From Anthoceros angustus (lineage: Eukaryota; Plantae; Anthocerotophyta): DNA of 64,000 nt. Positions 21,401 to 40,137 of the stretch are shown piece after piece. Position numbers and translations under genes: made by a program. How positions within the stretch are numbered: position 1 is the first letter of the stretch; each line of letters begins with the position of its first letter. The stretch spans positions 124,001 through 188,000 of the forward strand of contig VJWM01000193.1 in assembly GCA_010909165.1 (NCBI GenBank), in the 5' to 3' direction. Under the pieces are notes generated by a model. The model was given only the letters and a program-made list of their open reading frames with translations, was not told the origin of the DNA and did no database searches.

Positions 21401-23544
21401 AACAATAACAAGTATACTTTAATAATTTTCTTATAGACCGTGCAAAGAGGATTCATAAGAAGATCTTCAAAGATTGACCACAATCAACTATTCAAGTCTT
21501 TGAAGAATAAAAATAAAAATACAAAAATTTTAGAAGATTGTTTTTTTTTTTTTGGTGAATTCAATGAGAAAGTTCTTCTAGGTTATACCCGAAAGTGTAG
21601 TGAACCAAACAACTAGTGGGTTTGCTACTTTGCTTTTGGAAAAGGATAAGCCAACCCCATATAATGGGGGAATAGGATGGAAACAACTTAATGTAGGTGT
21701 ATTAAAGATTTTCATGAATATGTCGCAAGTAGTTTGTAAGTACACTAGTTTGGAAGTATAGGCCTAGTTGGTCATGTGCAGAAGGTGCCCCTCAATGTTT
21801 GACCATCACTACAATCCATTCAAGAAAACAATTAGGCACACTTGGTAAACAATAATTTTTATACTTGGAGTTTATCATCATGGAAAATTGTGACCACTTC
21901 GTGTTTGTTTGTGTGAAAAATCAGTACATTAATAAAGAATATGTAAATTTTTTACTAGCTCACATATGATCTTATATATATATTGAAGAATTTATAAAAT
22001 ATTTCTGTTATGTATGCTTGTGTTTGCTAGCAGCAAACATATCCTTCGATGTCTAGAGATATTCACTCGTTTTGGATAAGAAAAAAGAGTAAAAGAAATA
22101 CAATATTTTAAATAACTAAAATAATAAAATTAAAAATTAATATTTCTATACATGTCTTGATATTGAATGCTGGCTATGCACATCATGTTTTATGGAAAGG
22201 AGATGAAGCGAAACTATACACCTAATAATTAAGTGGCGAAATAGGTATGTACGTATGTACCTGGTACGTACATGGCACATCCTTGGACCATAAGAACGGA
22301 TCAATGATTCGTATCCAAGTCCAGTCCATACATTTGGATGTACGTATGATTCGTAAAGTCGTAAAGCCGAGAGAATGTAAGAGTGGACGCTTTTTCCTGA
22401 AAAGTGCACAGCGCTGGTTAGAAAGTACCGAGTTCCAGTTTCGAGTAGTGGACTCGGAGGCGTCCCGGGACCCAGTGTCGGCAAAAGCTCTTTCAATTTC
22501 ATTCTGCCAGTCAGCTCGAGTACAACGATCCAGCGATGGAGGCCAGCCCGCCCCCGCCGATTGCACTTTGCGACTCTTACGAGGCAAAAGCGAGGGAGGC
22601 GAAGGCATTGCGCAGGCACGGCCGTGGCAGACTCTGACAAGCGCGTTGCACCGCATGCATGATCCCTTCACTGGCCTGGCCAATGGCCGCCCCGACGTAC
22701 ACTGCCGTACGGTCCATGGCAGCCTTTCGCAGACTCCCAGACTCGGACATGGCGCTTTCTGTTTTCTGCTTTTATTTTCGCTCCTGCCCGCCCCCAGCTG
22801 GTTCATGAACGAGGTGGAGTCTGCATTTAGGCGTTCACTGTTTGTCGAATTATTGTGTGTTGTGTAGTGTGTGCAGTGGAACATGCACAGTCGCCTGTTC
22901 GGAGGGCAAGGCACGTTGGTTTCGCTCGTGCGTCACAGCAATGTGGATGGATGCTGGTTCGGAATTGGGAGCTGCCATGGTTTGCACTGATTTGTGGAAG
23001 CAAGTTGTTTGTTGCTTTGAGGAATCTGTGATCACGGAAGAGTGCTGTGCGCGTAAAGCCTATTCGGGAGCTGCGATGGCCTGTTCAACTTTCCGGCCGG
23101 AGACTTCTGACAAATGAGCACTGCAAGGAGATCATCACCAAAGGGCTGGGTAGGGCAGTGTACTGTGTGGATGCTGGCTGCCTCGCGTGCTGTGTTGCGC
23201 GTCCGGACAAGAAAAGGTGAGGAAAAGACGAGTGTCCAGCTCTAGGGCTGCTGACACTTTTTGGATAACTGTGCGGGACATGGAGTCTCGACTCTTGTAG
23301 AGTAATAATCACTCATCCTGCTGCCAGCCAGCAGAGCGCTAATTCAGACTGGCTTCTTGAAAGCGCGTCTAGGTTGACGGCTTCTGCATCCGGAGACCGC
23401 GGAGGCTTGGACGTGGTCCATCGACATGATGTCTACTGTAGTGCACGACTCTTTCGCAATAGAGTATTCTCTTGGTATATACTGTGGCAGCCCGATGGCA
23501 GGAGGTCTGGAGTCTGGAGTCTGGATAATGTGCTGGCCAAGGAC

Positions 23545-26500
23545 CTAGCCTCCTAGCGTGCAGCTCGTTGTATCTACTTCGGAAGGAGAATCTTGGCAGG
23601 CGGGCAAGGTGACATATTGACATAGAAAGAGGTCTGACAGGGATTTGCCATGCCTGTCCAGCCTGCGTGAACAAGTGACCCCACCGTCGAGCACGCCTGC
23701 CAGAACAACATTCAAGGCACAAACTCCCCGGACCTGGTATATCTCTATCTGCAGATGGCTGTCTTCCGTTGGTTGCCTGTTGGATGACGACCCTGTGGAA
23801 TGTGGGTCAAGACCTGGCGGAGGGGCGTTACGTTTTTCGCTTTCCAGAAGAGGGTCTGCTACCTGCTTCACCCACTGGGGGGTGATGACCGTCTCTAGCC
23901 TTGGAAGATCGGTTGCACAATGTGGAATCAGACTGACGTTTAGTTGGTTCCCTTTATCTCCTGTTCTGCTGTGTGCAACTTGATACAGAGGGATGCTGAC
24001 GCCTCCAGGAGCAGGTTGACAAGCAGGAACATGCACGTATGTTACACTTGCCGGCTCAGATTTTTGAATGCTAGTTTTGTTGCCTCGGGTGGACCGTTGC
24101 TGATTTGTCTTAGCACATTCGCTAGACCTCATGCTGCTCCTCCATGTTACCTCTTCTCGTGGCACCTGCAATATCCGGTTAGTGGGACAGCCCATGGTAC
24201 AAACAGGTTGATTATGTGCAGACATCAGGCTTTTCTGAGCAACACAGCTCGTACCAGGACCTTGGTCAATAAAATTTGATCCTTGCATCCAGTACTGCAT
24301 AGATCCAAGGGGGCAGTGAGCTTCTTGTCATCCATTTCATTGCCAAAAGTACTGCTTCCAAAACAGATATTTGACGCAATTTGGACGTGATGGTGAGAGT
24401 ACCTGATGCCTCCCCCTCCAGCTGGACCATTGGTGTACAGGGCCTCAAACTCTTCTGTTAGCCTTTGCGCATGGGCTCGTGACTGGAAGAGCCCATCCAT
24501 ACGCAGCCTAACTTCGGAAGCCAGCCCCTCCATACGCTCACTGCCCTTTAATCCGGCCTGAACTCTTGGCCACACTCTCAGGCTGTCTACTCCGATCATA
24601 TATGACAGGATATGCTTACTGCTTCCAGGAATAGCTTCTTCCATCCATGCCCGCACCTGTCTTTGCATATTGAAAATGAGAAACGACCTCTCTTCACTAC
24701 AACCGGTCAATTCTTGGATAAAGCTAACCTTTGTCCTCACCAGATAGTCTCCAGCAGCAGCTCTGTCTTCACAGCACGGGCCTCCGTATGATATTTCTCC
24801 CCAACCTTTCACCCCGCAATGCTGTAAGCCCAAAAGTCCAGCCAGTCAGATATACAGGCGGTGCTCAAGGACAAGTCAAATTGCTGCACTACAGTGACAT
24901 TGATCCGAAAGGTATCTAACCTCTGGTATGAGACGAAGCAGTCTCTCTGGGCACAGTGGGAGAGACGGCCGAGCACCTTTGGCTAGCACCCTGTCCTTAC
25001 TCTGCGGTACGAAGGACACATCTGTGAAGTCAACCACCTGTCCACCATAAGAGAAACGTCAGATCAAACAACCCAGCACACAAGACGCAGTATGTATACA
25101 CGAACTACGATACAACACTACTCTCTCACCACATCGGGTGTGATGTATGAAGCAGGATCTCCAATCTCATACAAGAGTTGCTGTGCACATGTGGCGGCAC
25201 TAAGTTCTCCACCACTGCCAGCAGCTTTGCATAGGATTGTTGTGCCATCCCAGCTGACCTCAGCATAGGGCAAAGAGATGTCAAGTAACTGCTGTATTGG
25301 GAACTTCCTGTGCTGGTCAGCTGCCGAGCCATATCCTCAATCAATGACGTATGTAGTCTACATGCTTACCATCAAGCTGTCTCACAAAGAACAGCAATAA
25401 CAGATGAACAAGAGTAAGGGGACACCAGGGTGCGTGTAGTATCCTCCAGTCAACTGGCAGCCACATTCAAGGAGATGTCCAGCCAAGGTTCCTTGAGCTA
25501 GTAGGTCGAATTGGTCCCAATCCCAACCAAGCTCATATACCTGGACGCCCAGGACAGGCTATTGAGGAATATGCATATCATACCCCTACATCCTTCCGAT
25601 GAGGACTAAGCGCCAACTGTCAAGAGAAGTCCAGAGATTGCTGCTTATTGCAGAGGAGTTTGATCCATCTTACCATTGGTGCTAAAAATAAAGCGGCATC
25701 AGCCGTTCGAGTTGTAAGGATTACATTAGGATTTCCAGACTCCAAAGCATGAAGAATGGGAGCTGCACCAAGGTACGTGCTAGAACCCTGCAAACCCTAT
25801 CAGCTTCAGTGAACTTGTTCACCCAAACATCCAGTACAAAAAACCAAAACTTAGGGAACTTAAATTGCTCACCACAAGACTATCACTGTTTTGTTCTTCA
25901 AAGACCACAGCAACATTCACTTGCAAATTCAGCTCACTTGCTGTCTTCAGGACTTGATTCTGAGCTCCAAGAGGATCAGCTACAACGAGAAAAGATATCC
26001 CTCAGATGACAGAGGTTTCAGAGCATTAAGAGCATTCCATTAACGCCAGGACTTACTTGCACCCATGTTGGTGACAATGCATACTGCCTGGTTCACTGCA
26101 ACAGGCAGAAGCACCTCCATCCATGAAGCAACTGCATACAGGAAAACCGGGTCACCATTGCAGCTCATGACTGCACCACAGGGCAAATGGAAGACAACGT
26201 CAATTCTTGACGGTATGGCCGGAATAGCTAGTACTTCGAGGATCATAGCCCAGGCCCCCATCGGCCATTGCATCGAACCGGTTTGCAAGAGTCCGTTCAG
26301 CTAGACACTCGAGCACGAGGTAATCCAAGTTTGGGACTCGGTTCAGCAGCTTCAGTGCAGCAGCAATCCTGTCTCCAGCGAAACCAGCTCCACATCCTAC
26401 GGTGACTGTGTGCTTGCGTCGGATGGGATTTGGCCTCTGGAAAGATGCAACACCGTGAACAGCTGTGTGGAGGCACTCCTAGTACTACTCAGCGTGTGAA

Positions 26501-26566
26501 TTGCACTCTTCTTACGGATTTCACCCGAGAGTCTCTTGCAGGCCCCGCATCCCTGGAGTCAGTCAT
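23545..26566 (-). CDS. Acyclic terpene utilisation AtuA / DUF1446 family protein, multi-exon
   Basis: VTVGCGAGFAGDR...LDYLVLECLAERTLA...GYDPR, WMEVLLPVAVNQAVCIVTNMGA, EVRLRMDGLF, EALYTNGPAGGGGI and C-terminal LYQVAHSRTGDKGNQLNVSLIPH...RRLDRHGKSLS. Start ATG 26566 inferred from splice phase. Confidence 0.9.
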
Positions 26567-26835
26567 CGTACAAGCTCACTCTGGTGCCCGCTCTTGCATA
26601 CGCCAAAGGCTGAAGAGGATTCTCGGAAGTTTTGTCAGCGGGGATACCACGCTTTTCTCGCGACGAGGAATGATCGAACTGCCGAGGCAGGAGCAGAAGT
26701 TTAGAACCGTGAGATAAATCAGACAGCAATTCCGAAGGACACTTTGATAATCGGATAGCAAGGCGAAGCTGCGGAAGAACAGGAGAATTGAAGGTCTGGA
26801 ATCACACTGAATGACAATGTTGGAGGCATCCTAGC

Positions 26836-28520
26836 GGCAGTGAGCTTATTCTTGTCATCAATTTCATTGCCAAAAGAATCGACAACAACAACAATAATAA
26901 TAGTTGAGATTTTTGCTGTCTCTTACCCTGATACCGACCCCTCCAGCTGGACCATTGGTGTACAAGGCCTCGATCCTTGTGTTAGCCATTGCGCATGAGC
27001 TTGTGACTGGAAAAGCCTATCCATACGCAGCCTAGATCGTGACTGGAAAAGCCCATCCACACGCAGCCTAACTTCCGAAACCAGCCCATTTATATGCTCA
27101 GTGCCGTTTACTCCAGCCTGAACTCTTGGCCACACTCCCAGGCTGTCTACTTCCATCATATGTGACAGGCTACCAGCAACAGCTTCTTCCATCCACGCCC
27201 GCACCTACCTCTGCATATTGACGAGAGAAACAATTTGTCTTCATGTGTTCTACAGTACAGCCATTTGATTCTTGTCCAACCTGTGCCCTCACGAGGTAGT
27301 CTGCAGCAGCAGCTCCTCTCTCTTCATAGCATGGACCGCCATGTGACGTTTCTCACCAACCTTTCACACCGCAATGCTGTAAGCCCAGAAGTCCAGCCAA
27401 TCAGATATACAGGTGGTGCTCAAGGACAAGTCAAATTGCTGCATTAGAGAGACATTGATCTGAAAGGTCTATCACCTCTGTCTGGTATGACACGAAGAGG
27501 GCTCTCTTGGTACAGTAAGACGGCCGACCACCTTTGCCTAACACACTGACCTTGATCTGTGGTTCGAAGGACACGTGTGTAAAGTCAACCACCTGCCCAC
27601 CGGAAGAGCAACGTCAACTTCCATAACCTACCACACAGGAGCAGAGGTATGTGTACACGAACTACTACACAATTCTCACCACATCAGGTGTGATGTATGA
27701 AGCAGGATCTCCAATCTCGTACAAGAGATGCTGTGCACATGTGGCGACACTAAGTTCTCCTCCAGTGCCAGCAGCCTTGCGTAAGCCAGTTGTGCCATCC
27801 CAGCTGACATCAGCATAGGGCAATGAAATGTCATGTGACTGATGTATTGGGAACTTCCTGTGGTGATCAGCCTCTGAGCTATGTCCTCAGTGACTTGCAT
27901 ATGTAGTGTACATGCTCACCATCTAGTTAATGTCTCACAAAGAAGGGCAATAACAGATGTACAACAGTAGAGGGACACCAGGGTTCGTACTGTATCCTCC
28001 AGTCAGCTGGCAGGCACATTCAAGGAGGTGTCCAGCCAAGGTTCCTTGAGCTAATATGTCATATACCTGGACGCCCAGGCATAGGCTATTAAGGAGTATA
28101 CATACAGAATGTTCGTCAGTATTTGGATGAACAAGTTCAATGCAACTGACAAGATTTTGCAGGGTTCCAGCTCGTACCTTGGGGAAGATCCCATTGTTCA
28201 AGCTTTGCGTGTCGAGGTACTCAAGTGGTGCTTAGGATGTGAATTACACTCGATCTTGCCGACTGAACCCGAGAGTCGCTTGCAGACCCAACATCTCTGG
28301 AGTCAGTCGTTGTAGAAGCTCACTCTGGTGCCTCCTTTTAACTACGCCAACGGTGTTGAAAAGGGTATCAAAGGTCACCGGCGTAAATATCACGCTTTTA
28401 TAACGACTAGTCTAGAGGCTTGAAATCTGAGCGAGGCAGGAGCAGAAATTTAGAACAAATCTGATAGCAATTGCGAAGGGAACTTTGATCATCGAATAAC
28501 TACGAAAGGACGGTGGAACA
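26836..28520 (-). pseudogene. Decayed tandem copy of the AtuA gene, including its promoter region
   Basis: Blocks homologous to 24330-24960, 25040-25600 and 26520-26760. The start context atgactgactcc reads acgactgactcc (ATG>ACG). The GCGAGF exon and the final exon are missing, and frameshifts are present. Confidence 0.85.
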
Positions 28521-28640
28521 ACAGCTCAGGGATCACGATGAAAGATACAGTTTTGCCAGCAGGTTGGCTTGTTCAGGAATGACCATGGCAGAGATTTTCC
28601 TGGCAACCTCTCCGCAGGGACCAAGGGTCTTAAATGGCAG

Positions 28641-31600
28641 ATGCAAACTACCGCCGCGAAAAGCACTAGCGTGCAACAAGTCCTTCACTATCAATCTCTT
28701 AAGACGTCGTCCAGCTGCTGCCAGGAGATTGGCATGGTGCAAAAGAGGTGCGCTTCTGCAGACAAAAATGCTATGTGTGCATTGGAGGTATTCTGAATCC
28801 TATCTGAATTTGACAGTGTAGCAACTGCTAGTGGTGTGAACCTGCCAAGTTCAATGCAGTGCAGGAAGGTGGGATAAAAGCTGACCAGCGAAAACATCAT
28901 GAGCTACTCGGTCGAAGCAGGACCCGATCTGAGAAGAAGGTACTCCTTCTTGCTCACCCTTTACACCAGCGTTAGCTCGAGTTGGTCGGTGTCCACAAAA
29001 AGTATATTGGATCTCATGGATACTTTCGTGCTTGAGAAGGTGGGCGAATTAAAAGAATCTGATCTCTTTGACCGCCAACTATTGGAGACGTTCCCTAAGA
29101 AAGAGCTGCAAGGGAAGGTTGTTATGGTCCGTTGTGACCTGAATGTGGTCTTCAAAAATTTTAAAATTGTTGATGAAAACTTCCTGCTCATGGTACCCAC
29201 TATCACCTATTTGGCTGAGGTTGGCTCAAAGGTGGTCCTTCTGAGTCATTGGACTGTATCAGAGGGAAACAAACAGACCTCATCAATTGCAGGTGTGGTA
29301 TAGGATGCTTTGCTGTGTATGTACTTGAGTCCACATGAACATTTCACATCATGGAGCCTCATTCCGCGCAACCTTGTCACTCATCTATTGGGATGTGTTA
29401 GTCATGCAGATGCACTATCTCGCCTTCTAAAGCGAAGAATTCTATGGACAACCCATGCTGTTGGGGAAGAGGCAGAGGAGAAGATCAGCAGTATGGATAA
29501 TGGAGAAGTGCTGTTGCTTGGAAATATGAAGCAGTACAAAGGCGAATATGCCAATGATGCAGCCTTCTCCAGAGCTTTGACAGCCAAAGTGGACCACCTT
29601 GTCAATGATGCTTTCTGTGTGTCTCATAGAGTGCTTGCATCTACAGTGGGAGCAGCTTCTTTTACATGTGCCAGACTTGCAGGTCTACAGCTTGCGAAGG
29701 AGCTTCTCTTTTCACAAAATATTCTTCAGAGTCGCATACATCCGTTTGTAGCAATTGCATGTCCTTTTCCTTCCAAACTGATAAATCTTTGCTTCGCACG
29801 AGTGCTATCTTTGTTCGAGCATCACATTCAGAGGGCTGCTAGTTACATGCAGTACAGTTACATGCTATCAGACCAGCTATGGTAAACTCAAGGTGAGCCC
29901 TTTACTTTGCAGATTGGAGGCGGGAAGCTGTCAGATAAAGTGGATGCTCTTCATCAACTGCTCTCTCGGTGCGACAAAATCTTTGTCACTGGAGCCATGG
30001 TGTTTCCTCTGCTTGAAGCAGCTGGTTTGCCAGTGCCTGCATCTTGTACAGAGCGACACATGTTGCCAGAAGCTTTAGAACTTCTAGATTCAGCTCGTGA
30101 CAACCAGGTTGAGCTTGTTCTCCCAAAGGATTTGATGCTTGCCAAGGACAATGCATCACATCTCACCACCAACATCTCAATCTCTCAGTCAGTCCCACAT
30201 GGTGCGTTCATATTCGTTGCTTCGCGTCTTTGGAAGATCAGTTGTTGGCAAGTGCCATGATCCTGTGTTCTCCTTTACCGCCTCACAGTTCTAGCGCTAT
30301 GTGCAGGGTGGCAGCCTGTAGATCTTGGACAAGAAAGCTTGGACGACATAGCTAACTCCGTTAGGCAGAGCAAGGTCTGCTTCGGCTGTTTTCTGTTCCT
30401 GACACCTGTAAAGGACAACAGTTTCACAAACTGACACATTCTTGTTTGCACATATGCCCATCGCTGCAGATGGTTCTCTGGTTTGGTCCTTGTGGAATGG
30501 GCCATGCCGCAGGTTCTACCACAGGACTGCTGTCACTTGCAAGGGTTATATCAAAGCAAAGTGCACAAGGATGTGTCACAGTTGCCGGAGGAAAAGACGT
30601 CGTCAAAGGACTAACAGAGGCAGGCGTGATCAGCATGATCAGCCACGTATCCGTATGTGGAGCAGCGTTTTGGCAGCTGCTGAAGGGACGTACACTTCCA
30701 GGGGTTGCTGCTCTCGATCCAGTTAAGACCTACATCTTGATCGTAGAGTGTGCTTTGTGCTGCACGGTTGTCCATATGTTCTGCTATTGTAGATGGAGTA
30801 AGAAGTGCTTTGTTTCCGCCTCTGATGAGTCTGTCCTTACCCTCAACATTTAGGCGGCACCCACTCCTCCAGACTGGGAAAGAGTCTACAAGGACCCATA
30901 CCTCCCCCTGACTGTGGATATTGGGTGTGGTGAGAGTTGTTCCTTCAAGTCTGTTTTCTTCCTTGGCCGTTCAGGAAGTTCATGTATTGGAAGAGAAAAC
31001 AGCTGTCGTAGTCTCTGGCAGGTAACGGGCTGTTTATTCTGAAGATGGCAGGCAGCTTCAGTTCGAGAAATTTTCTTGGGTTGGAAGTTTTTCCGAAGGT
31101 AAGTAACTTACCCCTGTAAGTCCTCCCGATTACAAAGCTTGCTCAGGCAGCAGATCAGCATCCAGCTAGCACAGCCCACTGATAGTTGCATGTTACTGCA
31201 GTTAGTTGAACGATGCGCTGATTCTGCTCAAGCCGACCAACTCCTTAACGCGTGAGTAACTTTCGAGTAACCGAGCCTTTCTTTGATTCGCAGTGTTTTT
31301 TGGAGGATTCCTCTCATTCTGAGCGTGTCTTGCGGTATAGACATTTCATAGCTGCAAACGCCACCTCGTCCTACAACAGGATAATTGCCTCCTATCCTGG
31401 AAACGTCTCTCTCGTCACCATACAGGTAAAGAAGACCGTCAAAACTGTGCACACCAGACGCCCCGCCCCGCCCCACATCCAGGCTCTTGTCTCACACATT
31501 CCATTCATGCAGTGTCCGGACCCTAACTTCAGCAAACCAGATAGCCGCTGGAGGATGGTGCAGAGACAGCTTGTGGAAGCCATCGCCTCAAGTCTGAGTC

Positions 31601-31920
31601 CTGGAGGCAAGGTAACGTTCTTCCCAACGCGGCATATGTGAACGAACGCTGGCCATCATGGACAACACACCTTGATAGCCCCTTCCGGCATGCAGGTATT
31701 CCTCCAATCCGACGTGAAATCCGTGCTGGAAGCCATGATGCAGGAGTTCAGGCTCCATGGGGGAGGAAGATTCACACTCAGCTCCGAACACCTCACGCCA
31801 ACCGCCTGCGACGAGAACGGATGGCTGAACTTCAACCCCCTGGAAGCATCGACAGACTGGGAAGATCACGCACTGGAGCGCGGCGACCGGATGTTCCGAG
31901 TGCTCCTCTCTAAACTTTAG
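28641..31920 (+). CDS. Fusion gene: degenerate phosphoglycerate kinase-like domain plus TrmB-type tRNA (guanine-N7) methyltransferase
   Basis: PGK-like: GKVVMVRCDLNV, KVVLLSH, VNDAFCVSHR, IGGGKLSDK, LVLPKD, DLGQES, LLKGRTLPGVAALD. Phase-0 intron 30722-30853 then joins TrmB exons 30854-30929, 31022-31098, 31202-31251, 31341-31425, 31513-31611 and 31696-31920 (VDIGCGNG, GLE, ANA, CPDPNF, VFLQSDV, TDWE). The N-terminal exons are uncertain. Confidence 0.85.
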
Positions 31921-32073
31921 CTTCATTCAACGTTCACACGTGAAGTAAAAAGAACAAGTCTGTTAGAGTCCACCCGGATGGAATTAAATTCTCCAAACTT
32001 TAGCTTCCTTCAACGTTCACACGTGAAGTAAAAAGAACAAGTCTGTTGGAGTCCACCCGGATGGAATTAAATT
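31912..32073. repeat. Tandem duplication, ~83-bp unit x2, overlapping the TrmB stop codon
   Basis: aaactttagctt.ttcaacgttcacacgtgaagtaaaaagaacaagtctgtt.gagtccacccggatggaattaaatt occurs twice. Confidence 0.9.
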
Positions 32074-32490
32074 TTCCTATCATGGGACCTAAGCTACTAG
32101 CACAGGGGCATCCACGGACCCCATCTAAGTACCGAACGAAGCCCAAGAAGGACGTTCTTATAAACTTAAAACGGTGAGTATAGGATGAAAGTACATTCTA
32201 ATTGCCTAGGTAGTTAACTACCAACATAAATCAAACGCGAAAGTTGGGTTTCTATCTGCGAATTCTATGGTGAGGTTAGGACGATATCAGGAATCCAGTT
32301 CAGTTATGACTACCTAGTTAGCGACTTGCAACTCGGCCCTTTCGGCATCGTTGGGCTGTTGGGCCTGGACATTCCGGAATCTGTATCACCGGCCAGCAAC
32401 CCACCCAGTGGCCAGTGGTAAGTTCCCCCGGAAACAGCTGCGCCTTGTCCACGTGCTACATATTGAGGTCCATTCCTTCAGCTATGGGAT

Positions 32491-35400
32491 TTAGTTCTCG
32501 ATCCCCTCCCCTGGCCACTTCGGATACACTCGCTTGTACAAGCTCAGGCATGCAGAATCCCGTTGCTGAATCACTCCGTCAAATGTGCATTTCATCGCTC
32601 CTATAAACATAACACGAGTAAGCTTCGACTGAACCACAAACAAATACTATCATAATCAAGCTCGAAGCCATTGAGGAAGGACTGTCAAACCATGTGTTCC
32701 AACAGGTTCGATTATCCGCCCACGCCTGCCATACTTTGTCCATAGTTCCACTGGCTGCAAGGTCGGGAAGCACACAGGTTTGAGTCACACAACAAAGCCC
32801 ATTCGACGCGTCACACACCTTTTGAGATGAATTGAAGTTCCAGTTACCTTGAACCACCGAACATCCTCAGGGTTATGAAACATGAACCGTATCACAGCCT
32901 TCCGCTTGTGCACTCGTTGTGGGTACCTGCCAAAAACGTGTCAGCATCACTTGCTCCGGCCCTACATGGGCCTGAGCCACATGCAACTTCAAGCGGTCCA
33001 CTATGGCGAGTTACGAAAACTATACCCTGAAAGAACGATCTTCTTCAAAATGATTCGGTCAGGATCCACATTCTTCAAGTGTCCCGAAGCAACCATCTCT
33101 CTCATTCCCTGTCCGTCATCCTTCAGCAATATCACGGGAGCAGGAGGAAAAGTAATTGGGGCATAGGCACTAGCCACTAGGAACTGTCCTGCACTTAAGA
33201 ACCTTTCAAACTTGTGTTTATTGGCATTCAGATTGTCTGCAGAGAAAATGGGCCTGCATCCAGAAAGCATGTTAATACACATATGAGACGAATCCCCTTG
33301 AAAACAAAGAGAGAACAAGGTGGGAGAGGCAAACCTGGCGGTAAACTGCCGGAAACCTGCATGAAATGTTAGCTTATCCTTGGACCTGATCTTGCTTTGA
33401 CATATGTCCGTCATCTTGATGCTACATACACACAAGCTCCAATCAAATCAGACCACACCAGCACAAACCAGTAAACAGTAATCCTGAGTGTACAGGAAGA
33501 CATCTAACCTGAAGTGGACAACGGACATTTTGGATTCATGCTTCAACAACCCGCAGGCAACATTAAATCTCCTGTCTTTAGATGCCAACAGGTTTCGGGC
33601 TGGACCAGAGGGCACACCAGATAGGTGGACTCGCACAAAAGTGCCAGCAGTCACACAGCCCGATCCGGAACCCTGTTCAACCTCCTCAGCCAGTCTCAAA
33701 ACATGCTTTTGAGTCCTCTGAAAATTTTGGAATGCAAAAATTCTTGCATAATCTGGAGGTAGTGTCTCCTGTGCAACAAAAGAACTGGTGTAAAATTGCC
33801 CATAAATAACAAGGAAACAAAGCCCCAAACAATTTGTTCCATCTCGACATCTACTTCAGCATCTGAATACATGAAACAAACCTTTGGATCCCAGGGCGAT
33901 GTTCGAAACGATTTCAAGCCCCTATACTTTGCAAAACGTTGTCTTGCAGGAACATCCGTTGGAGTGTCCACATCATCTGGAAATTCTGCAAGGCTCATTC
34001 ACAGGAGACACAGTCAGCACCACATTCCCAACCAAAAGTTGATCACTCACAGCGCCCTCTGCACAAGATTTTCATCGAATCCAATCCACACGGAACTTGT
34101 CTGTTTACCTTCATCTGTTTGTCGGGCAGCTTTCAGCCGCTGAAGTTCCGAATCCCGTTGAGCTGCAGTTTGCTCATTCTCCTGAAGGAAAGAAAAATTT
34201 ATCCTCAACACATGCCAGTATACATCACCAGGAGAGCTGCAACAATTATACTCACCATCATCTCACTCTGCCCATCTTCATCATCCCAAACAGAAGATGG
34301 AGGCCTTTTGATGTCACTCGCACACTCTTCTGAAACATGACCATCCTCATCACCATCTTCCTCCATTTCCATTTCGGCCACACCAGCCATATCTTCATCT
34401 CCATCACCAGTATCGTCTTCAGCTTCAGAGTCAGAGACCTCATCCACATACCAAGATGCCTGCACAACAGAGACAAGGTAACCCCAAAATTTAAGACTTG
34501 CATCGCAGGAGCTACAAAGAAAAAACTACGCAAATAGCTTCAAGGGCAGAGATAAGCAGTGCACATTCACCTGGTACTTTGACGTCCCCACAGGCAACAA
34601 CTTTCTCTGTGATCTACGAGAAGCTGTACTGTTCGCTTCGGCCAGCTCCATCTCGGTTGGCCATGTCTGCAACCAGTCATATCTTGTCAGGGGCTGGACC
34701 CTTGCCATCACAGACTGCCATGATCACTCTTAACTCACCCATTTACCTGCTCACCAGCCAGGGGGTCTGGGACATTCGTGATAATCAGAGGTTCTTGTAG
34801 TTCAGGGTTGGGGGTCAGAGAAGTCAATGCCTGCAGACAGCCACACAGAGCACCAACACATTAAAGAATGGCGGAGCAAGAAAGGAACAGGAGGAAAACA
34901 AGTAACCGGTTATGCAATAAGGCAACCTTAAGGGGCAGCTCATCGACAAGCATGGCATCGTCTGTCACTTTGGATTTCCTCTGCCTTGCAGACAAGGGGA
35001 AGGGATCATCCATGACATCTATTTTCGCTATTTGAAAGTCTCCAATTGCTGCAACATGGACCTGTTTCCAGAAGCAATGAGGGGAAAAACAGAACAATCT
35101 ACTAATGACCAGGGTAACTATCACAATGAAGAGTACATGGAAAAGACATGAATGTGACTACCAGTTGATTGACAGAAAGCGCTCGCCCTCGCACATATCC
35201 AGAGAGGGAAAGAGTCCCTCTGTCTGGTTCGACAGAATCTTCAACATAGTCTAGCTGCACCCACACAGAACGACCTGAGTTTAGGACTTATGCAGTGGTA
35301 GTGACAACGAAAAGCGAGCACAAGTGAATCACAGAAGAAAGGAAACCTGTTGGGCGAGAATGTAGGGCCGTTGGCTGCGCCATACTGGTTGGGATACTCG

Positions 35401-38591: not shown

Positions 38592-40137
38592 ATGGCCTTC
38601 GTGTCCAAATGGGCGTGCTGCTGCGCGCAAGGCGAGGGCAGGTAATTTAAGTCTCCTGGGAGGCAGGCTGTGAATTTGGGCATGCTGTGATCCGGTTTTT
38701 GGAAGGTGCATTCTGTGGCATCCGGGCGGGGATTTTGCGGAATTGTCTTTGTGGTGGAAGTGGGATTGTTGTGTGTGAGCGTTGAATGTGCATCCGCTTG
38801 TGGGCGCTGTGCAGGCCCGATAAGAAGGATAAGGGTACGTGGCGGATATTCTCGTTGAAGGAGTTGCATACCGCCACGAACAACTTCAATTATGACAACA
38901 AGCTTGGGGAAGGAGGGTTTGGGAGTGTGTACTGGGGGCAGCTCTGGGATAGCACACAGGTGGGTTGGTGATTTCCACGATGTTGGTCATGGGTTGTGGA
39001 TGTGGATGGGGATGGGGATGGGGATGGGGATGGGGATGTATGTGGATGGGTGGGTGAGTGGGTGTATTGATGTGTCTGGCACTTTTGGGTTTTTTGCCGA
39101 ACAGATTGCTGTTAAGAGATTGAAGGTGTGGAGCACGAAAGCGGAGATGGAATTTGCCGTTGAAGTGGAGATTCTGGGGCGAGTTCGACACAAAAATCTG
39201 CTCAGCCTTCGGGGCTACTGTGCTGAAGGGCAAGAACGGCTCATTGTGTACGACTACATGCCGAATCTGAGCTTGCTGTCCCACTTGCATGGGCAATTCG
39301 CATCCGAATCCCAGCTCGACTGGCAAAGGAGGATGAGCATAGCGATTGGATCTGCTGAGGGCCTCGCGTAAGTGGTGCTGCTGCTTTTGCTTCACGCCTT
39401 TCGTGTTGCCACTTTAGACTAGAGATGTGCCTGCCCCTCGCGTCACCTCACCCGAAGAACGTGCTCTTGGCAGGTACCTGCATCACTACTCCACGCCTCA
39501 CATAATCCACCGTGATGTCAAGGCCAGTAATGTATTGCTTGACTCCAATTTTGATGCGCAAGTGGCTGACTTCGGTTTTGCCAAGCTCATCCCAGATGGT
39601 GCCACTCATGTGACCACGAGGGTGAAGGGGACCTTGGGCTACCTAGCTCCGGAATACGCTATGTGGGGGAAAGTGTCGGAGAGCTGCGATGTGTACAGCT
39701 TCGGGATCTTGTTGCTGGAACTCATCAGTGGGAAGAAGCCAATTGAGAAGCTGGGACCTGGGACGAAGCGGACAATAGTCGAGTGGGCTGCTCCTTTGGT
39801 CTTTCAGGGGAGACTTGAAGACCTTGTGGACCCAAAGCTGAATGGCAGATATTCAGAGGACGAGCTGAGAAGAGTTGTGCAGGTTGCAACTATGTGTGCG
39901 CAGAACACCCCAGAAAACAGGCCCACCATGTTGGCAGTCGTACAACTGTTAAAAGGAGAAGTTAAAGATAAGGCCGCCAAGGTGGAAAATGGCCAAGATG
40001 GTGACAAGAAGTTGAAGCTCGACACTGTCCAGTACGAGGAGGAATTGCTGGCTGCAGATGATGGATCCGCGGAATCCAACTCTGGAAATGCTACTGAAGG
40101 TATCCATGCCGCCCGGCCTGGGGAGAGAGTCCACTGA
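38592..40137 (+). CDS. Receptor-like cytoplasmic kinase, At3g15890/PTI1-like type, 4 exons: 38592-38641, 38815-38959, 39105-39367, 39474-40137
   Basis: [11 protein letters not shown].., [65 protein letters not shown] and DVYSFG. All catalytic motifs are intact. Confidence 0.95.

Follow-up and report, generated by a model that had tools for sequence, protein, structure and literature searches.

A transcript-verified hornwort gene joining a probably non-catalytic phosphoglycerate kinase fold to a TrmB-like methyltransferase belongs to the PGK4B family

A stretch of 64,000 nucleotides (nt) from the hornwort Anthoceros angustus (NCBI GenBank assembly GCA_010909165.1, contig VJWM01000193.1, positions 124,001 to 188,000 of the forward strand; hereafter the window) carries a plus-strand nuclear gene, a single unit of 13 exons with the coding sequence at 28579-31920, whose encoded protein runs from a basic presequence through a full-length phosphoglycerate kinase (PGK) fold to a TrmB-type S-adenosylmethionine (SAM) methyltransferase. 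The gene is almost certainly an orthologue of PGK4B, in which a PGK-like domain is fused to a TrmB-like methyltransferase and which Foflonker & Blaby-Haas (Mol Biol Evol 2021; PMC7826186) reported in streptophytes and in all land plants except Arabidopsis, with LOC_Os10g30550 as the rice member; that paper states its function as unknown and holds no residue-level or functional analysis of it. The PGK and TrmB fusion is therefore already in the literature, and the locus adds another member without essential difference. New here are the transcript-verified gene model, the paralogy with a stand-alone TrmB and the loss of tRNA-contacting elements, together with the finding, read from the sequences, that across land plants the two active sites have decayed by degrees, the early-diverging hornwort copy being the least decayed. 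The best reading, to which we give about an even chance, is an organelle-targeted TrmB-like methyltransferase in which a dead PGK module would act as a built-in substrate-binding or scaffold domain.

The gene model was drawn from a reading of the DNA by GT..AG rules, from Pfam matches and from transcript contigs. The transcript data were two runs stored as assembled contigs, namely X1 from the same organism (100% identical to the window, with 56% of the sampled window words, about the exonic share) and X2 from a related species (~7% of positions differing from the window). The exons and the two introns of particular note are:

Exon 1, 28579..28747, + strand: ATG at 28579 and second ATG at 28585; presequence of 56 residues, Arg/Lys-rich and holding a single acidic one; frame set by joints 28747/28860 and 28939/29040.
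Exon 2, 28860..28939, + strand: small, extends the weakly conserved N-terminal region; both joints present in an X1 contig.
Exon 3, 29040..29292, + strand: PGK-like domain begins (RCDLNV, DENF, SHWTVS); Pfam PGK profile 5-71; transcript joints; alignment A1.
Exon 4, 29410..29756, + strand: PGK-like N-lobe (LGNMKQ, VNDAFCVSHRVLASTVG, PFVAI); Pfam PGK profile 70-187; alignment A1.
Intron with GC..AG border, 29757..29912, + strand: partly retained; Pfam profile contiguous (187/188) across it.
Exon 5, 29913..30201, + strand: start of the PGK-like C-lobe (IGGGKLSDK, VTGAM); Pfam PGK profile 188-283; an X1 contig begins exactly at 29913.
Exon 6, 30307..30374, + strand: PGK-like; joints 30201/30307 and 30374/30470; alignment A1.
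Exon 7, 30470..30721, + strand: end of the PGK-like domain (WFGPCGMGH, GGKD, SVCGAA, ...LKGRTLPGVAALDP); Pfam PGK profile 305-379.
Domain-junction intron, phase-0 GT..AG, 30722..30853, + strand: joint in the X2 contig; loose end of the X1 contig, 17 letters equal to 30855-30871; intron position also in L002, a hornwort-like genomic contig from another run.
Exon 8, 30854..30929, + strand: TrmB-like domain begins (PDWERVY...PLTVDIGCG); alignments A1 and A2.
Exon 9, 31022..31098, + strand: NGLF... and NFLGLEV, SAM motifs I and II; transcript joints; alignment A2.
Exon 10, 31202..31251, + strand: transcript joints; alignment A2.
Exon 11, 31341..31425, + strand: HFIAANAT...YPG; transcript joints; alignment A2.
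Exon 12, 31513..31611, + strand: CPDPNFSKPDSRWRMVQ, holding the motif of the catalytic Asp and the basic loop in reduced form; Pfam Methyltransf_4 profile 77-115; alignment A2.
Exon 13, 31696..31920, + strand: LQSDV and STDWEDH; stop codon TAG at 31918-31920; joint 31611/31696.

Eleven of the 12 introns were supported by X1 or X2 contigs, the 11 GT..AG joints coinciding with the exon borders to the base after cut shifts. One X2 contig of 2986 nt extends from 28482 to 31937 and spans both domains including the junction 30721/30854, and an X1 contig crosses the same joint and stops 18 nt into the first methyltransferase exon. Since the X2 contig spans all joints and the X1 contig crosses the junction, the PGK-like and methyltransferase parts are spliced in frame (phase 0) into one RNA. 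The in-frame joining of a full-length PGK fold to TrmB, which an earlier note had proposed from the letters of this DNA, was thus borne out both by this junction in X1 and X2 and by the Pfam matches, which follow the exons collinearly: PGK (PF00162) in four consecutive pieces (profile 5-71, 70-187, 188-283 and 305-379) and Methyltransf_4 (PF02390) in the downstream piece. That there is one fused gene is to us practically certain. Two separate genes, or a mis-joined model, might be argued from the X1 contigs, which break inside the first methyltransferase exon and have only 18 nt across the junction, yet the X2 contig spans all exons with the 30721/30854 joint, the junction is a frame-keeping phase-0 GT..AG intron that recurs in L002, and more than 20 full-length orthologous fusions exist; such a model is scarcely credible, and the transcripts across 30721/30854 give one gene with one transcript, excluding the two-gene model.

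The only joint not displayed in the transcript contigs is 29756/29913, that of the GC-donor intron (donor ATT/GCATGT), at which the orthologues all read P-F-V-A-I-I-G-G (alignment A1). The counterpart intron in L002 (4242-4364) has the same ATT/GCATGT donor, is 123 nt long and is open in frame. In the window the intron is partly retained, because both X1 and X2 contigs cover it (X1 depth 4.4 inside; still present in the X2 contig, where 4 nt are inserted), and its retention leads to a stop at 29883-29885. A GT donor at 29748 was considered as an alternative and rejected, for it would remove the V-A-I kept in all orthologues. At the 5′ end, the start at ATG 28641 given in the earlier note had to be abandoned: the spliced frame opens at ATG 28579 (or 28585) and puts 28641 out of frame, with a stop in the exon 28860-28939. 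In the presequence exon, X2 has a 1-nt deletion and, 7 nt on, a 1-nt insertion (28665 and 28672), so that the frameshift is compensated, and its substitutions there have no third-position bias, consistent with what is expected for a fast-evolving targeting peptide. In the PGK-like exons 3-4, third codon positions account for 11 of the 19 X2 differences listed (a partial list), which is consistent with purifying selection. From the difference in X1 depth between the 5′ and 3′ contigs no internal promoter was inferred, the depth being a whole-contig mean and the 3′ contig reaching 1.8 kb past 32200.

Homology searches were run with single exons of the window gene, and the full-length Psilotum protein P0004 served as the proxy for the fold and family scans. 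An exhaustive HMMER search with exon 4 returned as best full-length matches proteins of 597-686 residues with PGK and Methyltransf_4 from Psilotum, Pteridium and Diphasiastrum, the best full-length relatives thus being lycophyte and fern proteins (45-56%). The search with the complete Psilotum protein added fusions in Adiantum, Ginkgo, Cryptomeria, Ulmus, Ziziphus, Beta, Cucumis and Clitoria, and further ones in Ipomoea, Ananas, Oryza, Phragmites and others. The methyltransferase part alone as query found a single protein. The PGK plus Methyltransf_4 architecture that the earlier note had wished to see traced is hence present in full-length proteins from ferns and a lycophyte to angiosperms, and the orthologues of the lycophyte, ferns, Ginkgo, a conifer and many angiosperms are collinear with the window gene. 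From exon 3 to the stop codon the window gene gives 11 exon peptides, each of which aligns over its whole length with 11 full-length fusions, with no gaps at the exon borders (A1), and the window matches 60 of the 73 columns that are at least 90% conserved among these 11 fusions, including the fusion-specific W of SHW, L and V of HRxLASTV, K of LKG and D of ALD. A closer orthologue is carried by L002, with the same architecture, the GC donor and the domain-junction intron. The window gene thus has in common with the PGK4B family the two-domain order, the full-length collinear alignment and the family-specific residues, and is consistent with its streptophyte/land-plant distribution; relative to seed-plant PGK4B, the window copy is less decayed and keeps PDP, RCDLNV, SHW and GGGKLSDK. 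In the databases most of these fusions are annotated as 'phosphoglycerate kinase', 'uncharacterized' or 'hypothetical'. PMC7826186 was all that literature searches for functional studies of the fusion turned up, and a soybean PGK survey (PMC13259330) was screened on the PGK domain alone, with neither methyltransferase nor tRNA mentioned.

The two-lobe PGK fold is complete in the window, the four exon pieces covering the Pfam profile from 5 to 379. In the AlphaFold2 model of the Psilotum orthologue (mean predicted local distance difference test score, pLDDT, 81.8; predicted template modelling score, pTM, 0.68), both domains are confident, residues 1-85 are disordered and the linker 481-483 is of low confidence; a Foldseek comparison of this model with solved PGKs gave template modelling (TM) scores of 0.87-0.91 over ~400 columns at ~36% identity. 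The full two-lobe fold is shared with canonical PGK (EC 2.7.2.3; e.g. the Chlamydomonas chloroplast PGK, 7ZY7), from which the fusion differs in having most substrate-binding and catalytic motifs altered and a methyltransferase at its C-terminus. The motifs of the window and of two canonical PGKs in the same alignment compare as follows (canonical PGK, then window):

RxDxNVP, RCDLNVV
DDTR, DEN-F
SHLGRP, SHWTVS
LENLRF, LGNMKQ
AHRAHAS, SHRVLAS
GGAKxxxK, GGGKLSDK (kept)
GGGM, TGAM
WNGPxGxFE, WFGPCGMGH
GGGDS, GGKDV
STGGGA, SVCGAA

The altered motifs quoted in the earlier note, DENF(L), SHWTVS, WFGPCGMGH, GGKD and SVCGAA, were all found in the translated exons. With the motifs given their general roles in PGK, in 3-phosphoglycerate (3-PG) binding, nucleotide binding and phosphoryl transfer, the basic 3-PG patch of the window is not intact (the Arg residues of DDTR and SHLGRP lost, the Arg of LENLRF changed to Lys, the SHLGRP His and the AHR Arg kept), and of the nucleotide and phosphoryl-transfer motifs only GGGKLSDK is kept, with TGAM, WFGPCGMGH, GGKDV and SVCGAA all altered. 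Seed-plant fusions decay further (RFDS, TSW, GGSNFLRK, VGSAA, QNASV). A set of 40 canonical PGKs has 94 columns conserved at 95% or more; 31 of these hold in at least 90% of 11 fusions, and the window retains 61. On this residue pattern the PGK part is probably a pseudoenzyme with no kinase activity, and the module would be non-catalytic and under selection for another purpose, because the ligand-contacting residues are unconserved in the family while 73 other columns are conserved.

The methyltransferase domain is of the cyanobacterial/bacterial kind. Its nearest solved structures by sequence are TrmB of Bacillus subtilis (2FCA, 7NYB) and Streptococcus pneumoniae (1YZH), ahead of METTL1/Trm8 and Escherichia coli TrmB. 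The class I SAM motifs are intact in the window, with VDIGCG/NG (motif I, in which DIGCG/NG is divided by the intron 30930-31021) and NFLGLEV (motif II), and so is the catalytic Asp (E. coli D144, Aquifex D133) in CPDP; the earlier note had been right on the SAM loop and PDP of this copy. These SAM motifs, the catalytic Asp and T-x-x-E are common to the fusion and bacterial TrmB (EC 2.1.1.33; 2FCA/7NYB, 1YZH, E. coli 3DXX). Substitutions that cut the activity of E. coli TrmB below 10% are reported in PMC10130221, and we mapped the window onto these residues via alignment A2, the local E. coli sequences being confirmed by the primer sequences of that paper. The equivalents of D144 (CPDP), R155 (SRWRMVQ), D180 (LQSDV), and T217 and E220 (STDWEDH) are kept, and those of R26, H151 (now Asp) and R154 (now Trp) are lost; among the basic elements (the R26 arm, H151, R154 and R155) only the R155 equivalent is left, two of the three basic-loop residues being lost. 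Because the alignment to solved TrmB begins at residue 31 of the B. subtilis protein, the fusion lacks the bacterial N-terminal arm; the PGK module, a fold of 390 residues, occupies exactly the position of this arm with ~5 linker residues between the domains.

Across the family the catalytic position varies. Among 27 members with a readable motif, PDPN or PDPD occurs in five (two Psilotum isoforms and three transcriptome proteins), and the window and L002 also have PDPN. DIGSGNG, LQSD and S/T-D-W-E-x-H are near-invariant. The Psilotum orthologue passes the Pfam PF02390 gathering score (92.4 bits).

Plants also hold a TrmB of their own without the PGK domain. This stand-alone protein of ~300 residues is of the At5g17660 type, that is AtTRM8b, predicted chloroplastic (PMC2956550), with LOC_Os01g35170 in rice (PMC5740945); Ulmus minor, Ziziphus jujuba and Clitoria ternatea have it alongside the fusion, and rice holds both according to the gene lists in PMC5740945 and PMC7826186. 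Since the two coexist, the fusion is, by sequence comparison, a paralogue, and neither the plastid TrmB itself nor the sole organellar TrmB; the 'bacterial/plastid-type' label of the earlier note is to that extent amended. The two are ~41% identical over the methyltransferase domain and have in common YPG, the C-D-x-x-G-W-L...NP-x-G insertion and the ANAT motif, and on this identity and the shared insertions they are probably sister methyltransferases. The stand-alone protein differs in keeping all mapped E. coli residues, a conserved N-terminal arm of R-I-R-Q-H-V-N-P-L (a motif that probably resembles cyanobacterial TrmB) and the full basic loop CPDPHFKKRHHKRR, which reads KKRHHKRR against SKPDSRWR in the fusion (A2). 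A locus, L001, from a scan with the stand-alone plant alignment was discarded as spurious, having no TrmB open reading frame (ORF).

Taken together, the residue pattern narrows the hypotheses, in that the basic TrmB elements are lost exactly where the PGK domain is attached and the catalytic Asp is unconserved. In the reading that we favour, the N-terminal presequence, Arg/Lys-rich and weakly conserved, would direct import into an organelle, the dead PGK fold would serve in cis as a substrate-binding or scaffold module of the SAM-dependent TrmB-like methyltransferase, and the fusion enzyme would methylate organellar tRNA at N7 of G46 (m7G46), in parallel with the canonical stand-alone TrmB paralogue. 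That the fusion is active in tRNA m7G methylation and is helped in this by its PGK part has, to us, an even chance or slightly less. Yeast Trm8-Trm82 and human METTL1-WDR4 offer a precedent of an m7G46 catalytic subunit needing a non-catalytic helper, and a built-in Trm82-like role for the PGK module is plausible by this comparison; the likeness is a functional analogy only, as the Trm82/WDR4 helper is a WD40 propeller acting in trans whereas the candidate helper of the fusion is a PGK fold in cis, and the catalytic domain of the fusion is closer to bacterial TrmB than to Trm8/METTL1. The more specific version, in which a dead glycolytic-enzyme fold was recruited to replace the tRNA-binding arm and basic loop of TrmB in the Trm82/WDR4 role, would be an unlikely one.

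Several observations weigh against this reading. The catalytic Asp is replaced in most orthologues, with PVPN in Pteridium and Adiantum, PNPN in Ginkgo and Beta, and PNPD in the remaining seed plants and Diphasiastrum; the change of this Asp to Asn or Ala abolishes Aquifex TrmB activity (PMC6320965), and E. coli D144A is more than 150-fold slower, not dead (PMC10130221). Because the PDP Asp is replaced in most orthologues, m7G46 activity is not to be assumed for the family, whose conserved function may be other than canonical m7G46 formation. On TIGR00091 the methyltransferase of the Psilotum orthologue reaches 91 bits, short of the 112.65 bits set as TrmB equivalog cutoff, a cutoff under which the stand-alone plant TrmB also falls (111.5 bits). 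The PGK-like domain carries close to no net charge, so that bulk electrostatics lend no support to RNA binding; in the comparison of net charge and isoelectric point (pI) the fusion PGK-like domains range in net charge from -8 to +6, the canonical PGK median being -6, by which RNA binding is neither supported nor excluded. The sole pointer to an organelle is the composition of the presequence, from which the assignment was drawn, Arabidopsis is entirely without the fusion (PMC7826186), and the same paper gives the function of PGK4B as unknown.

Some of these facts also feed the strongest of the rivals, a double pseudoenzyme or an enzyme of changed substrate, in which neither domain would carry out its ancestral reaction across the family. 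The protein would then serve as a regulatory or RNA-binding factor that binds SAM, or would methylate a target other than tRNA G46, and the hornwort copy would merely retain more ancestral residues. An unconserved catalytic Asp (PNPD, PNPN, PVPN) beside near-invariant SAM motifs, a basic loop shrunk from KKRHHKRR to SKPDSRWR, a score under the equivalog cutoff and a canonical stand-alone TrmB in the same species all fit it, but the window copy keeps D144, R155, D180, T217 and E220, the PNPD proteins have an Asp two residues downstream that might substitute, E. coli D144A still methylates slowly (PMC10130221), and no result points to an alternative substrate; we hold it to be rather unlikely, though the likeliest of the alternatives. 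An active kinase, or a 3-PG/ATP sensor gating the methyltransferase by metabolic state, could find support in the R-x-D-x-N, the His of SHW, the Arg of SHR and both Lys of GGGKLSDK that the hornwort copy keeps, and in its 61 of 94 canonical-invariant columns. Compared with the aligned canonical PGKs, however, the Arg residues of DDTR and SHLGRP are gone, as are both the Asn and the Glu of WNGPxGxFE, the GGGD Asp and the GGG loops. No ligand-binding residue that is left is conserved throughout the family, where a selected sensor should conserve its pocket, so that this role is quite improbable. The dead PGK or sensor of the earlier note accordingly survives in its first half, with the ligand and catalytic motifs degenerate, and is doubtful in its second, a 3-PG/ATP sensor being unlikely because the would-be ligand-binding residues are unconserved among the orthologues. 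Still less probable is a part in arsenic detoxification, by which the fusion would contribute to arsenate tolerance, its PGK-like domain working on arsenylated or related phosphoglycerates in the manner of PGK3 and possibly of green-algal PGK4A. The link was raised tentatively in PMC7826186, where in prasinophytes ArsJ and GAPDH3 adjoin PGK4A, the sister of PGK4B, and arsenate sensitivity is described for a PGK3 mutant of Chlamydomonas, but in the window the phosphoryl-transfer and nucleotide-binding residues are lost, the methyltransferase is TrmB-type, and no ArsJ-type transporter or GAPDH lies within ~10 kb of the fusion gene, its neighbours being AtuA-family, Tsr1/BMS1-type and protein kinase genes.

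Of these neighbours, the upstream one (~22200-28200, minus strand, divergent) is an intron-containing AtuA-family gene (Pfam AtuA, AtuA_ferredoxin), and the X1 5′ contig extends ~400 nt upstream of 28400 toward it. The downstream one (33001-33828, minus strand, convergent) has a Tsr1/BMS1 C-terminal ribosome-biogenesis domain (PF04950), and, as the X1 3′ contig continues 1.8 kb past 32200, its 3′ end and that of the fusion gene may overlap. An ORF with a protein kinase domain (PF00069 / PF07714) lies at 39427-40137 on the plus strand. A tandem duplication of 83 bp in 2.1 copies (31907..32077, plus strand; TRF score 314, 95% matches) begins 11 nt ahead of the stop codon and extends into the 3′ untranslated region (UTR), repeating the end of the coding sequence and the start of the 3′ UTR; the X1 contig has one copy fewer, perhaps through collapse of the repeat or through polymorphism.

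Roughly all land plants have conserved this family, and PGK gene-family surveys may count the fusion as an ordinary PGK. On the unlikely reading in which the PGK fold replaces the tRNA-binding arm and basic loop of TrmB, land plants would gain a second, differently recognising organellar m7G methyltransferase, and the shift of the catalytic Asp from PDPN to PNPD in most vascular plants would imply a remodelled active site or a new substrate. The early-diverging hornwort copy keeps the most ancestral-looking residues in both domains and is for this reason a good candidate for such questions, being suited to probing the methyltransferase activity, the contribution of the PGK fold, and which enzyme would form m7G46 in plastid versus mitochondrial tRNAs.

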